From Chlorokybus atmophyticus (lineage: Eukaryota; Plantae; Mesostigma and Chlorokybus algae): a DNA stretch of 6,109 bases. Under the pieces are notes generated by a model. The model worked only from the letters and a program-made list of their open reading frames with translations. It was not told the origin of the DNA and made no database searches. The position numbers were made by a program, and so were the translations under genes. Positions 1,146 to 6,109 of the stretch are shown piece by piece (position 1 is the stretch's first letter; the number at the start of each line of letters is the position of its first letter). The stretch covers positions 685,131-691,239 of the forward strand of contig RHPI01000671.1 in NCBI GenBank assembly GCA_009103225.1, given 5' to 3'.

Positions 1146-1240
1146 AGTGTTGCGAGCTGGAGTTGAGCGTGTGGTCATTCCAAGCTCCTTCCTTGATGTT
1201 CTCATTGATTGTCAGCTACATATTTGCAACATTCATATGC

Positions 1241-1273
1241 ATCATGCTATTATCATGCTATTATCATGATATT
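1241..1273. repeat. Tandem repeat, 11-bp unit ATCATGCTATT x3
   Basis: atcatgctatt atcatgctatt atcatgatatt; one mismatch in the third copy. Confidence 0.9.
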
Positions 1274-1969
1274 ATAAGAATATGATATGAATAACAGGAT
1301 AAGCTGATTTGGGTGCCTGCCATGCTTGCTTCGCACCTAATACAATGTTGGATGTACAACAATATCAATTATGATTAGCAAGTACTAAACATCAAATGTT
1401 TCAAAAAGTAAATTGGTAAGCTACATGTTTGCAATTGATGACTATAAAAAATAAAAAATAACAAACATTCGTGATACAATAAAATATGCATGCTTCTTAA
1501 CTGGTGATTGTCATGCGCGAGCATGTAGTGTCACGTGCATGATGCCCTCGGGGCTGGCGACATGGATGGACCTTGGGATTTTGGCTCTCATAGCCATTTT
1601 ACAGGGTTTATGTGCTGGGTTTTCATTGGGAACTCATGTTTGGGTCCTCATGGACGTGAGGGAGGTGTGTTCGAGGCGTATCTACAGTCAGATACGGAGC
1701 TGACAGCATATTTGGGTCACTATGGTATCTCGCACAGCTGTTTCGGAGTTGTGACTTTGAGAAGCCATAACTTACAGTTGGAGTGGCGGTTTGGCCATGG
1801 GTTGGCGTCAAAAGATGCGTCTTGAAGTGTACTTGAAGAGGATGAGCTGGGATAAGCCTTTCCTAACTGTTTACCGTTACTTATCAACGCCACCATGACT
1901 GTTACTATGCTGGTGCAGATTGACAGTTAGGGTAGTTGGAGAGTTGGTTGGGCTTGAGCTCAACGGTGG

Positions 1970-1977
1970 TATATAAG
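1970..1977 (+). promoter_or_regulatory. Candidate TATA box of the element promoter (possible LTR U3)
   Basis: TATATAAG in a more GC-balanced context, about 390 nt upstream of the gag ATG. Motif match only. Confidence 0.4.
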
Positions 1978-2362
1978 GCTTTGCTAGCTTGTTTCCTAGT
2001 TTGGGTTGGATGCAAGTTGGCCTACTGGAGTGCAAGCAACACCTTTGGGAAGAGGTTCTTGGCTGAGCGGATGCGTGTGCACATGCTTGCATGTATGGCG
2101 TGTGTGCACGTGTTCATTGCTGTGCGTTGCTGTGCATGAAGGGGTGTGTGTCACTGTTGCGACTTTGATGCACCGTATGGGCTGCCTTAGCATGTACTTT
2201 GAGTGAGGATTGAGTTGGGACTGCTCTACACAAGTGAATGGCTGATTGCAAGTCGAGTTGTGGTCTACTTGCCTACCTTTTGCAAGGGGACACGCATCTT
2301 TCACTTGCATCCAACCCATCAGCTGAGTTTGCTCGAGGTAGAAGCAAGTTGCAGGCGAGTTC

Positions 2363-4537
2363 ATGCCCACCAGATCTGGAGAGGACTGGCAGTCACGCCC
2401 ACCCAAGCCGCCCTCGAAGAGAGGAGCGAAAGGAAGGATCACTCCGGTGGAGGAGGGCCTTGCCGAAGAGGTGGAGTTGTCGAGTGACGAGGAGTCCGAC
2501 ATCGAGGACGTGGGTGGAGAGATGCATGATACAGCTGCAAGCATGGATAGCACACCGAAGTTTAGTGGGAGGCCTGGCACGGCGGACCTACGGGACTTCA
2601 TCGACCGCTTCGACTCCGAGATGGTCAAGTGGGAGTATCGGGACAAGTCGGGGTGGGACGAGCACAAAGCCTTCAAGATGTTGCCTCTATACCTCAAGGA
2701 TGAAGCCCTTGGCACGTGGAGAGAGTTCAAGGAGCAGCTGGAGGTGAGGGAGAGGGCGTTGCGGCTCGGCGCACCGGCTGCGTTTGAAGCGGAGTGGAAG
2801 AAGGAGCAGCCCGTGACTGAGTTCAAGGCGCTCTTGAGGAAGACCTACCCACAATCAACACCCGCCAAGGTTCGTGAGCTGAGTTTCTTCAAGCGCAACG
2901 CCCGGGAGACGGCGAGGATGATGTATACGCGCATGCTCAAGCTCTTGACGGACACGGACTACAAGGTGATGACGGATCAGACCGCGGCGGTTGTGTACCT
3001 TCAACAACTAGAGGCGGACTTGAGGCTGAAGGTGGAGACCATGTTGACCACTCAGTCCGAGTTTGGCACATACACGCTTGCGGATGTCTTCAAGGTGGCC
3101 GAGACGGCAGAAATTCAGCATGAGTACCTCAAGAACATTGACCGACAGCGTCGGGGGTTGAAGTTGCTTGAGATTTCGGAGGAGAAGAGCTCTTCCAAGC
3201 CCGCGGCAACATCGGCGGCAAGCAAGGCAGCTGGTGGGAAGCCAAAGGAGTTCAAGCATGCCAACAACGCGGTTGTGGAAGGTGTGTCGGGTGCCAAATG
3301 CTGGTCGTGTGGAGAGCAAGGCCATATTGCAAGGGATTGTGGGAAAGGCAAGAAGGTGGTGTGCTCTCATTGCAAGAAGGGTGGGCATGTTGATGCCAAG
3401 TGTTGGAGTAAGCATCCAGAGCTGCGTCCACAACAAGGAGCGGCAGTCGGAGCTCACTCGAGTGTGAGAGCGGAGCCATCAATGTCGGAGGTGACAAAGG
3501 CATTGGCGGCAATGCAATCGGAGTATGCATCGTTGAAGAGCATGCTCGAGCGAGGGAAATGGCCCGAGAGAGGAGCGGAGGATAAGCCAAGCAGCTCCGG
3601 AGGTTACCTCGCGTATAGTGCGCTCTCCGGAGGCACTAAGGTGGCAGCGGTTGCGACGACGAGAGCGTCGGCACGCCGAAACGCTGCACCAGCTCCCCCG
3701 ACTAGGATGGTTGAGGAGGAGGCCGCGCCCGTCCGCGAGGAGGGTGTGGATCATGATAGGATGCGGGCACCAGCTGCACGCATGCCTATGTCATTTAAGT
3801 TGCTGCCAACAACCCCGTTGGAGCAAGAGAGTTCGCGCTCGGAGGGTGCGAAAGTGCAGCCGACTGCTACGGCAACGGCGCGACATGATGTCGGCGTCGG
3901 TGGCGGTGGTGAGCACAAGAGAGTGGGGGAGCTGCTACAGATGTGTGTAAAGCTTCTCGAGGGTGCCAAGATGCTTTCCCAACAGCCCGCAACTCAAGCC
4001 AATGAAGAAAACTTGGAGTTGACGGCGCCGTTGGAGAGCGTTGCGGCGGAGCTGGTCGGGCAGCCGCTTGTTTGCTTGAAGGACCTTGGAGTCAGCAAGG
4101 AACACGTGGTGGAGCTGTTGCAAAGTGCTCTAGACACCACTAGGACTGCCTCGACAAAGTCTCATGACCATATGAGCAAGTCTCATGAAGATATGGTGGC
4201 GCAAGCAGGCCGTATGGTTGCGCGCGCGGAGCTGGCGGCGCCCGAGGGGTCCGCGTCGGCGTCGAGTTCTCTCACTCAGCTTGAAGACAAGCTGGAGGAA
4301 GGTGTGGGGAGTGTAGGAGGGATGTTGGCAATGCTTCCCGCCACTCGGCCGGCCTTGAGAGAGAAGATATCGCCGAATGTGGCGATGGTGGACAACCGTG
4401 GGGGGCACATCAGCCTAGACGGCTTCGTGCCAGATGTTGTCTTGGTGGATACAGGTGCACAACCTGTCATTTTGGGTGCTAGAGCTGTCAAGGGGATGGG
4501 ACTCAGCCCCAGGAGTGGGAGCCATGCCCGGTCATGA
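2363..4537 (+). CDS. gag: Gag(-protease N-half) polyprotein, 724 aa: capsid-like region, two zinc knuckles, long linker, retropepsin catalytic motif
   Basis: Long ORF with in-frame TAG at 2339-2341 upstream of ATG 2363. PKFSGRPGTADLRDFIDRFD from 2555 resembles Ty3/Gypsy Gag N-terminal segments. Knuckles at 3299-3340 and 3362-3403, DTGA at 4448-4459. Alternative starts at ATG 2522 or 2543. Confidence 0.9.
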   Translation: MPTRSGEDWQSRPPKPPSKRGAKGRITPVEEGLAEEVELSSDEESDIEDVGGEMHDTAASMDSTPKFSGRPGTADLRDFIDRFDSEMVKWEYRDKSGWDEHKAFKMLPLYLKDEALGTWREFKEQLEVRERALRLGAPAAFEAEWKKEQPVTEFKALLRKTYPQSTPAKVRELSFFKRNARETARMMYTRMLKLLTDTDYKVMTDQTAAVVYLQQLEADLRLKVETMLTTQSEFGTYTLADVFKVAETAEIQHEYLKNIDRQRRGLKLLEISEEKSSSKPAATSAASKAAGGKPKEFKHANNAVVEGVSGAKCWSCGEQGHIARDCGKGKKVVCSHCKKGGHVDAKCWSKHPELRPQQGAAVGAHSSVRAEPSMSEVTKALAAMQSEYASLKSMLERGKWPERGAEDKPSSSGGYLAYSALSGGTKVAAVATTRASARRNAAPAPPTRMVEEEAAPVREEGVDHDRMRAPAARMPMSFKLLPTTPLEQESSRSEGAKVQPTATATARHDVGVGGGGEHKRVGELLQMCVKLLEGAKMLSQQPATQANEENLELTAPLESVAAELVGQPLVCLKDLGVSKEHVVELLQSALDTTRTASTKSHDHMSKSHEDMVAQAGRMVARAELAAPEGSASASSSLTQLEDKLEEGVGSVGGMLAMLPATRPALREKISPNVAMVDNRGGHISLDGFVPDVVLVDTGAQPVILGARAVKGMGLSPRSGSHARS
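3299..3403 (+). other. Two tandem CCHC zinc knuckles (nucleocapsid domain)
   Basis: CWSCGEQGHIARDC (3299-3340) and CSHCKKGGHVDAKC (3362-3403) both match CX2CX4HX4C exactly, with a 7-residue linker GKGKKVV. Confidence 0.95.
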
Positions 4538-4740
4538 TCAATACCTCGGCGGGGACCGTAGAGGCCGTGTGCGGCATAACGGTGCAGCCGGTGGACATAT
4601 GCTTGACTGCGGTGGGAGGTGCTACCACGTCCTTCAAGGTTCGATGCCTCATCACGGATGCAAAGGGGTACGATGTGCTGCTCGGACAAGACTTCTTGTT
4701 CCCCGTCGGCGGCGGCGTTGACAATTGGATCGAACAAGGG
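4400..4740 (+). other. Retropepsin-type aspartic protease domain split over two reading frames
   Basis: VVLVDTGAQPVILG in the gag frame (DTGA 4448-4459). The downstream frame gives QEWEPCPVMINTSAG... and YDVLLGQDFL (4669-4698), the hydrophobic-hydrophobic-Gly-x-Asp motif at the C-terminus of retropepsins. Domain edges are approximate. Confidence 0.88.
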
Positions 4741-6108
4741 TTCTTTCGGCCGCGTTGGCGTGTGGGTGGAGGGGAGAAGGCCTATTTTCCGTTGAGCATC
4801 ACACAAGGGGGTCTTGAGAGGTCTCCAACCTCTGCATCTGCTGTGTGGGCGTGCTTGAGTCGCCGTTCAGTCAAGGGATGGCTTGGTGACAGCACCGACA
4901 TGTACTATGACCATGTGGAGGAGGGGGAGAGTGTCCTCGCACACATGGAGGAGGGGAGACCTCCGGAGCTGGTCTATATGGCGCAAACTCAGTCACAAGA
5001 GCTGGAGTTGGCTTCACAACATCGTGCTCAGCGGCAACAAGAGGCTCAAGACAAGGTTAGCCAAGCATGGATGAAGGATGTGATGGCATTGGAGCCGCCA
5101 TTGCTGCCCGAGGGTGTGAGAGCTGTTCATCCGCCTATCAACTACAGCACCGTCGAGTGGAAGGTCCCCGAGGAGGGTGTTGTGATGGTGGAGCTGTTCG
5201 GTGGCATTGCAAGTGGGCTTGCGGCCGCGTTGAACGCCGGCATCAAGGTGCGGCGCTATATCTATGTGGACCCTTCGCCAACGGCGCAACAAGGTGCACA
5301 ACATCATGTGAGGATGTTGTTGAAGAAGTATCCAGATCTGCTACATGAGGATGCGGTGAAGGGCTTTCAAAGCACATGGCCGCAAGACATTTGCTTGATA
5401 GGGCCACATCAACTTGCAGCTATCGGCCATGTGCATTTGCTTGTAGCCGGGTGGGAATGCCAAGGGCATTCACGGGCTGGTCATGGCAAAGGATTGATGG
5501 ATGCGCGCTCGTCATTGTTTTGGGAGTTAGTGCGCATCATCAACATGATTCAGCAAGGACAAGAGCAGCCCATGGCGTACGTTGTCGAGAATGTACCAGC
5601 TGAAGATGACAAGCGCAAGCGCGTGCGAGAGGACTATCAGCTGGTGAGACATGTGCTAGGCCATGAGCTGGTCATGGATGCGGCACGGCATGGTTCGCGC
5701 GCACATCGGCTGCGTGTGAAGTGGACAAACCTCGCGCCGGTTGAGTTGCTTCGCACGGTGCAGCAAGAGTACTCTAGACCGCAAGGTTTGACAGTCAACC
5801 AGGTGCTGGAGCATGGGCGCACAGCACAACAGGTCAGCAAGGCTGATCGGCCGCCTCAAGAGGTGGTGAACCAGGTCGGGCACGACATGGCGGCGCTGCC
5901 GACATTGGTGACATACTCAGGCTCTTATGCATTCCGCAAGGGAGGGCCAGGGCTGGTGTGGGACTCACAGAACAGTAGGTTGGAAGAGCCGACAGCTGGT
6001 GAGCGCGAGCGTGCGATGGGGTTTTTGTCCGGTGCGACAGCGGCGCCGGGACTAAGTGAACAACAGCGCCGTGTGCTGCTAGGACAAGCCATGGACCAGA
6101 ACAGCATG
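4510..6108 (+). CDS. pol: Pol-frame continuation (3'-truncated by the window): protease C-half, linker and C5 DNA methyltransferase; 533 codons without a stop
   Basis: Manual translation: this frame is open from 4483 (after TAG 4480-4482) to the window end, 542 codons, first ATG at 4534. It is absent from the ORF track because no stop occurs in the window. Confidence 0.92.
5179..6108 (+). CDS. C5-cytosine DNA methyltransferase catalytic domain embedded in the retroelement polyprotein
   Basis: Motifs in canonical order: I VELFGGIASG (5188-5217), II RYIYVD (5254-5271), III PQDI (5380-5391), IV GWECQGHSRAG (5449-5481, Cys 5458-5460), V GLMDARSSLF (5491-5520), VI VVENV (5581-5595), VIII DAARHGSRAHRLRVKWTN (5677-5730), TRD with PTL (5899-5907), IX ERERAMGF (6001-6024), X RRVLLGQAMD (6067-6096). 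Confidence 0.93.
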
Positions 6109-6109
6109 G

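Follow-up and report, generated by a model that had tools for sequence, protein, structure and literature searches.

We analysed a 6,109-nucleotide stretch of Chlorokybus atmophyticus DNA (contig RHPI01000671.1, positions 685,131 to 691,239). This whole stretch, hereafter the window, very probably consists of flanking host DNA followed by the 5′ part, about two-thirds, of one Ty3/Gypsy-type retrotransposon copy that carries a DNMT3-type DNA methyltransferase (DNMT). As we read it, the element part comprises a leader, a gag gene whose product bears two zinc knuckles, then an aspartic protease, a linker and an intronless DNMT3-type domain, all belonging to one polyprotein, while reverse transcriptase (RT), RNase H and integrase would be expected beyond the window end. 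Retrotransposons of this Gypsy-DNMT3 kind were already described in 2018 with KnitGypsy-Dnmt3, a Gypsy-type, DNMT3-bearing element of Klebsormidium nitens (de Mendoza et al. 2018, Nat Commun 9:1341, PMC5890265). The copy in the window is a further, divergent lineage of that kind.

The gag open reading frame (ORF) spans 2363..4537 on the plus strand, as do all element features given below, and was delimited by the ORF list, Pfam and alignment to relatives. It encodes 724 amino acids and ends with a TGA at 4535-4537. Two CCHC zinc knuckles are found at 3299-3340 and 3362-3403 (Pfam zf-CCHC, 8e-5), and across most of its length the protein is 22-29% identical to the gag parts of the gag-protease-DNMT proteins of relatives. 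An exact look-up of the gag protein in protein records returned no entry. From about position 4400 the same frame encodes the N-terminal part of a retropepsin with the active-site motif LVDTGA (4442-4459). The C-terminal part of the retropepsin, with VLLGQDFL at 4675-4698, is found in a second frame together with a linker of about 130 residues that holds no known domain (4483..5154). Because the protease domain is split between the two frames, its Pfam match in the window itself is weak (E=0.096); the relatives that align to it carry PF13650 and PF13975. Of the hallmarks of Ty3/Gypsy elements, the window holds a gag with CCHC knuckles together with a retropepsin whose active site is of the D[T/S]G type.

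The second frame, with codons starting at 4483, 4486 and so forth, runs without a stop to 6108. These 542 codons would stay open by chance with a probability of about 1.8e-10, as calculated from base composition. Following the linker, the frame encodes a DNMT3-like C5 cytosine methyltransferase domain (5155..6108), identified by Pfam, profile comparison, AlphaFold2 and Foldseek. The motifs are found in the canonical, non-rearranged order: motif I, ELFGGIASG (5191-5217); motif IV, GWECQ (5449-5472); motif VI, ENV (5581-5595); motif VIII, AHRLR..W.N (5695-5730); motif IX, ERERAMGF (6001-6024); and motif X, LLGQAMD (6076-6096). The window end falls inside motif X, and the last residues of the domain lie beyond it.

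A previous sequence-only reading of this DNA had proposed a DNMT catalytic domain straight after the protease and suggested a Pfam search to check it. The domain is indeed there, with motifs I, IV, VI, VIII, IX and X located in order, and its PF00145 score of 37 bits (E=3.5e-9) exceeds the curated cut-off of 22. That reading was also right that the ORF list misses the DNMT frame, since ORFs that run off the window end go unlisted. It had further placed gag, protease and DNMT in one frame with neither stop nor intron. This is true of the C-terminal half of the protease, the linker and the DNMT, which form one intronless open frame, but the active-site half of the protease lies in the gag frame, on the other side of a single break (4483-4537).

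By sequence profile and predicted fold, the domain belongs to the DNMT3 subfamily. A single-sequence search of the PDB returned human and mouse DNMT3A, DNMT3B and DNMT3C at 2e-7. When a profile built from 35 family members was used, DNMT3A was found at 1e-24, compared to about 2e-12 for DRM2, 2.8e-14 for the closest DRM-type chain, 3e-9 for M.HhaI and 1e-5 for DNMT2. The AlphaFold2 model made from the family alignment has a mean predicted local distance difference test score (pLDDT) of 95 and a predicted template modelling score (pTM) of 0.92. Searched against the PDB with Foldseek, its best 50 matches are all catalytic domains of DNMT3A, DNMT3B or DNMT3C, with a template modelling (TM) score of 0.72 when normalised by the model and of 0.80 when normalised by the target.

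The catalytic cysteine, the glutamate of ENV, the arginines of motif VIII and the glycines of motif I are invariant or nearly invariant across the family, and every residue conserved to this degree is present in the window DNMT. Motif IV comes in two forms: 53% of the 169 aligned family DNMTs, including that of the window, read G-W-E-C-Q and the remainder read G-W-P-C-Q.

With about half of the family carrying GWEC instead of GWPC, we considered whether the domain might not be a DNA methyltransferase here, and might methylate RNA or serve only as a DNA-binding or structural module. The DNMT domain of the Klebsormidium Gypsy element would fit this alternative, as it gave no methylation when expressed in yeast; the authors, however, judged that experiment inconclusive, since human DNMT3B also failed in it (PMC5890265). 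The conservation of the catalytic residues also argues against the alternative, as does the predicted fold, which superposes on DNA-bound DNMT3A and DNMT3B. Moreover, the related DNMT3 domains of the Symbiodinium DIRS elements (SymbioDIRS-Dnmt3) perform de novo CG methylation in yeast, and these are the sole element-borne DNMT3 enzymes for which such activity has been demonstrated (PMC5890265). We therefore regard a function other than DNA methylation as unlikely and take the domain as a putative DNA methyltransferase.

We next place the domain in its family. An exhaustive HMMER search over 1.84 billion protein cluster representatives yielded 1626 representatives at E<=1e-3, of which 259 are found at E<=1e-30. 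Many family proteins are 1000-3400 amino acids long with the DNMT in the middle, and in more than 150 of the listed relatives the DNMT is embedded in a gag-protease polyprotein. The named members come from Marchantia polymorpha, from Closterium sp. NIES-53, NIES-54 and NIES-68, and from Scenedesmus sp. PABB004, where the protein is annotated as 'pol'. At the loci of relatives, gag is followed by protease-DNMT, RT-RNase H and an integrase that often carries a PHD finger. No Klebsormidium sequence was found among the matches of the protein searches. Since nothing more than 55% identical was found, the copies of the source genome itself are apparently not in the protein collections. A protein-guided scan of metagenomes found no relative, and thus no closer copy there.

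In a maximum-likelihood tree of 88 DNMT domains, the window stands beside a clade of 24 rows, with a Shimodaira-Hasegawa-like approximate likelihood ratio (SH-aLRT) value of 89, which is not strong. This clade contains the Marchantia copies and environmental gag-protease-DNMT proteins of 1150-1775 amino acids, and it is separate from the Closterium and Scenedesmus groups. At one Marchantia locus (L004), split repeats are found in the order A...B-A-B.

Regarding the choice left by the sequence-only reading between a member of a described family and an independent capture, the relatives sharing the same embedding support the former, that is the kind of KnitGypsy-Dnmt3. In many of them RT, RNase H and integrase follow, contrary to what that reading had expected of a one-off chimera. 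Its placement of the DNMT inside Pol holds in part: the domain is embedded in a polyprotein, but in the closest clade it shares the first ORF with gag and the protease, ahead of an in-frame UAG.

Three observations on the relatives deserve separate mention. A PHD finger (PF00628) ends the integrase in many members (for example L005:4811-7933, L007:5423-8542, and among the listed proteins), at the place where many Gypsy elements carry a chromodomain. It is possible that this finger is a chromatin-reading targeting module, encoded next to a DNMT. The two Scenedesmus sp. PABB004 'pol' proteins (P0026 and P0176) have 3225 and 4177 amino acids with the DNMT at residue ~1860-2180, and may result from the nesting or fusion of elements, or reflect a different architecture. 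Finally, a 15.9-kb contig of 1x coverage, whose name ends in '_c' and possibly flags it as circular, holds two tandem copies of a related element, repeated at a period of ~7.9 kb (L002:1-12144). Homopolymer indels distinguish these copies from each other and illustrate the indel noise of such assemblies.

The break between the two frames falls within the protease, with the catalytic DTGA in the gag frame and the remainder, together with the DNMT, one base back. The frames overlap at 4483..4537; when relatives are aligned, the break falls at about 4505-4513, next to a short run of C. Because of this break, the copy as assembled is unable to make Gag-protease-DNMT as one protein. A single frame runs through the protease in the relatives P0016 and P0032, in copy 1 of L002, at the Closterium locus and in about 20 gag-protease-DNMT proteins. 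A metagenome search with a DNA pattern spanning the break gave 0 matches. We are confident that the break is either a mutation private to this copy or an assembly indel.

A programmed −1 ribosomal frameshift would give the break a function: unshifted ribosomes would produce a Gag with half a protease at its end, and the complete protease and the DNMT would come from shifted ribosomes alone. In one relative (L001, 37% identical) the frame does change in this direction too, only a few codons from the corresponding position, and CCC-AG is found at the junction in both. Nonetheless, L001 is a long-read contig of 2x coverage on which the element is broken into many ORFs, and it was found via a length filter biased towards proteins that begin at the break spot. 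The signals of programmed frameshifting are also lacking at the break in the window, where we found no slippery heptamer of the form X XXY YYZ and where shuffled versions of the next 100 bases fold about as well as the real sequence (z = -0.44). Since most relatives are continuous in the protease, and since the break sits in a homopolymer run, where indels typically arise, we find a programmed frameshift improbable and retain the private mutation or assembly indel as the explanation.

In the clade nearest to the window, a different device appears to separate the DNMT from the RT. There, ORF1 (gag-protease-DNMT) and ORF2 (RT-RNase H-integrase-PHD) share one frame and are split by a single UAG-CAA. 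This layout is found at all four loci for which DNA is available, that is L004:13835 (Marchantia), L005:4799, L006:6000 and L007:5408; for a fifth contig, represented by protein only, arithmetic puts ORF1 and ORF2 in the same frame. The extended context UAG-CAR-YYA, which is the readthrough context of tobamoviruses, fits three of the four loci. Judging from these sequences, the in-frame UAG-CAA is probably a signal for stop-codon readthrough, with the DNMT on the Gag side of it.

The window ends ~100-200 codons short of where such a stop would be expected. We see about an even chance that the same holds in the lineage of the window, so that its DNMT would be part of the main product, Gag-protease-DNMT, and not of a low-abundance Pol, with a conserved UAG-CAA readthrough site just past the 3′ end of the window. 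If this is true, the DNMT would be produced at levels similar to those of Gag and perhaps packaged at such levels too, which would favour cDNA methylation within the particle or a bulk action on the chromatin of the host. The available text of de Mendoza et al. 2018 (PMC5890265) mentions neither readthrough, frameshift nor Marchantia, and the UAG layout in DNMT-bearing elements may be a new detail.

From the sequence, domain order, fold and family membership described above, we infer activity, substrate and readthrough along the following lines. The element RNA would be translated into a Gag-protease-DNMT product and, in the closest clade, occasional readthrough of the in-frame UAG-CAA would yield the full polyprotein including RT, RNase H, integrase and PHD finger. 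The amounts of DNMT would then be Gag-like in that clade. The protease would either release the DNMT or leave it attached, placing it in or near the particle where the cDNA forms. With S-adenosylmethionine as methyl donor, the DNMT could methylate the new DNA of the element or the DNA around its insertion. Benefits to the element discussed previously are the masking of cDNA as self, protection from deaminases, the shaping of chromatin at the insertion site and self-restraint (PMC5890265).

Several points weigh against assigning the window to a Gypsy-DNMT3 retrotransposon that functions in this manner. The window does not reach RT, RNase H, integrase or the terminal repeats, and the copy may be incomplete. 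Given the protease frame break, the copy may be dead. The best identity to the window DNMT is 40-55%, and it is at most 41% over protease, linker and DNMT. The DNMT tree was built without Klebsormidium nitens or cellular DNMT sequences, and a grouping with KnitGypsy-Dnmt3 is presumed. Motif IV of the window has E-C where nearly all C5 methyltransferases have P-C. Lastly, the case for readthrough comes from the relatives only.

Two further explanations of the locus itself were weighed. The stretch could be a host gene domesticated from such an element, given that its frames are long and open and that the Marchantia relatives are annotated as ordinary genes. A domesticated gene accords poorly with the break in the protease frame of this copy, with the retention of gag and protease and with a base composition unlike that of the flank, and we consider it very improbable. 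Weaker still is a one-off chimera or misassembly joining a retrotransposon gag-protease to a host DNMT3 gene, a reading that the single copy and the missing RT and integrase in the window might suggest but that is scarcely credible when a single open frame of 542 codons spans the C-terminal protease half, the linker and the DNMT, when the fusion is common to hundreds of clusters and several organisms of the green lineage, when most of the stretch is found in two independent studies, and when the window DNMT is intronless and groups with element-borne DNMTs in the tree. A retrotransposon copy of the Gypsy-DNMT3 kind is thus the best explanation of the window.

The first ~1500 positions (~1-1500) are read as flanking host DNA, which is A+T-rich with a G+C content of 0.32-0.42. 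The content steps up to 0.50 in 1501..2362, and based on this step we regard 1501..2362 as the probable 5′ non-coding part of the element, either leader or 5′ terminal repeat. Across the coding part it reaches 0.58. We found no internal repeat within the window that would mark a long terminal repeat, and because no second repeat copy lies inside the window, the 5′ boundary of the element is placed by inference only. The observed/expected ratio of CpG is 0.33-0.59 in the flank (1-1500) compared to 0.78-0.84 in the element (2363-6108); the local composition statistics skip places 1111-1154. The flank values are consistent with host DNA depleted of CpG, as methylation would give. The higher CpG of the element and its two long open frames fit a fairly young copy.

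Among the words sampled from the stretch, 72-76% are present in two sequencing runs, which come from different studies and bear different organism labels. Accordingly, the stretch is not peculiar to one data set.

No RNA family was matched by Rfam in places 1155-6109. Pfam found no family for the minus-strand ORFs 1996-2826 and 4276-4806, for the plus-strand ORF 1535-1825 or for the linker between protease and DNMT, and we take the three ORFs to be chance occurrences in DNA rich in G+C. The flank contains an inverted repeat at 858-944, with 22-nucleotide arms that are 86% complementary, a spacing of 43 nucleotides and a near-palindromic core in A+T-rich surroundings. It also contains a long C-rich, homopolymer-like tract at 262-290 and a simple-repeat section, outside the element, to which places 1111-1154 belong.

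These elements are of wider interest for three reasons. Retrotransposons that carry the very class of enzyme which hosts use for silencing them are an unusual twist in the conflict between host and transposon. Moreover, the kind is far wider in the green lineage than the single charophyte of 2018, as it extends to a liverwort, zygnematophytes, a chlorophyte and hundreds of environmental clusters. Finally, the closest clade conserves a UAG that separates DNMT from RT, which offers a testable idea about dosage, according to which the DNMT would be made with Gag.

Among the systems already known, the elements of Marchantia polymorpha (for example Mp_4g09160 and Mp_8g17980) and of metagenome contigs encode gag-protease-DNMT followed by RT-RNase H-integrase-PHD. 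The window shares their domain order, and they form the nearest clade in the DNMT tree; identity is ~40% over protease, linker and DNMT and 25% over gag. In contrast to the window, their protease is encoded in one frame, and their 3′ halves and repeats are visible.

The animal DNMT3A and DNMT3B and the plant DNMT3 and DRM proteins share the catalytic fold and motif order of the window domain, with DNMT3A, DNMT3B and DNMT3C as its best matches in both sequence and fold. However, the window domain has no PWWP, ADD or UBA targeting domain, is fused to a retroviral-type protease and reads E-C in motif IV; unlike DRM, in which the motifs are rearranged, it keeps them in unrearranged order. The SymbioDIRS-Dnmt3 elements of Symbiodinium likewise carry a DNMT3-type domain inside a retroelement polyprotein, but they are DIRS elements with a tyrosine recombinase, not Gypsy elements with a DDE integrase. 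Their DNMT has been treated as an independent acquisition (PMC5890265).

With KnitGypsy-Dnmt3, the window shares a Ty3/Gypsy-type organisation and an intronless, non-rearranged DNMT3-type domain that lies in a polyprotein and keeps its catalytic residues. DIRS-like split repeats of the order A...B-A-B were noted for Klebsormidium (Fig. 4 legend, PMC5890265), and the same arrangement is seen at the Marchantia locus, a relative of the window, which itself covers only the 5′ end of its element. The two also differ. At no more than 55% identity to any protein found, in a comparison that included no Klebsormidium sequence, the window represents a divergent lineage, probably of another host. And while the DNMT of KnitGypsy-Dnmt3 was described as part of the Pol ORF (PMC5890265), the clade neighbouring the window has it in the gag-protease ORF, ahead of the in-frame UAG.

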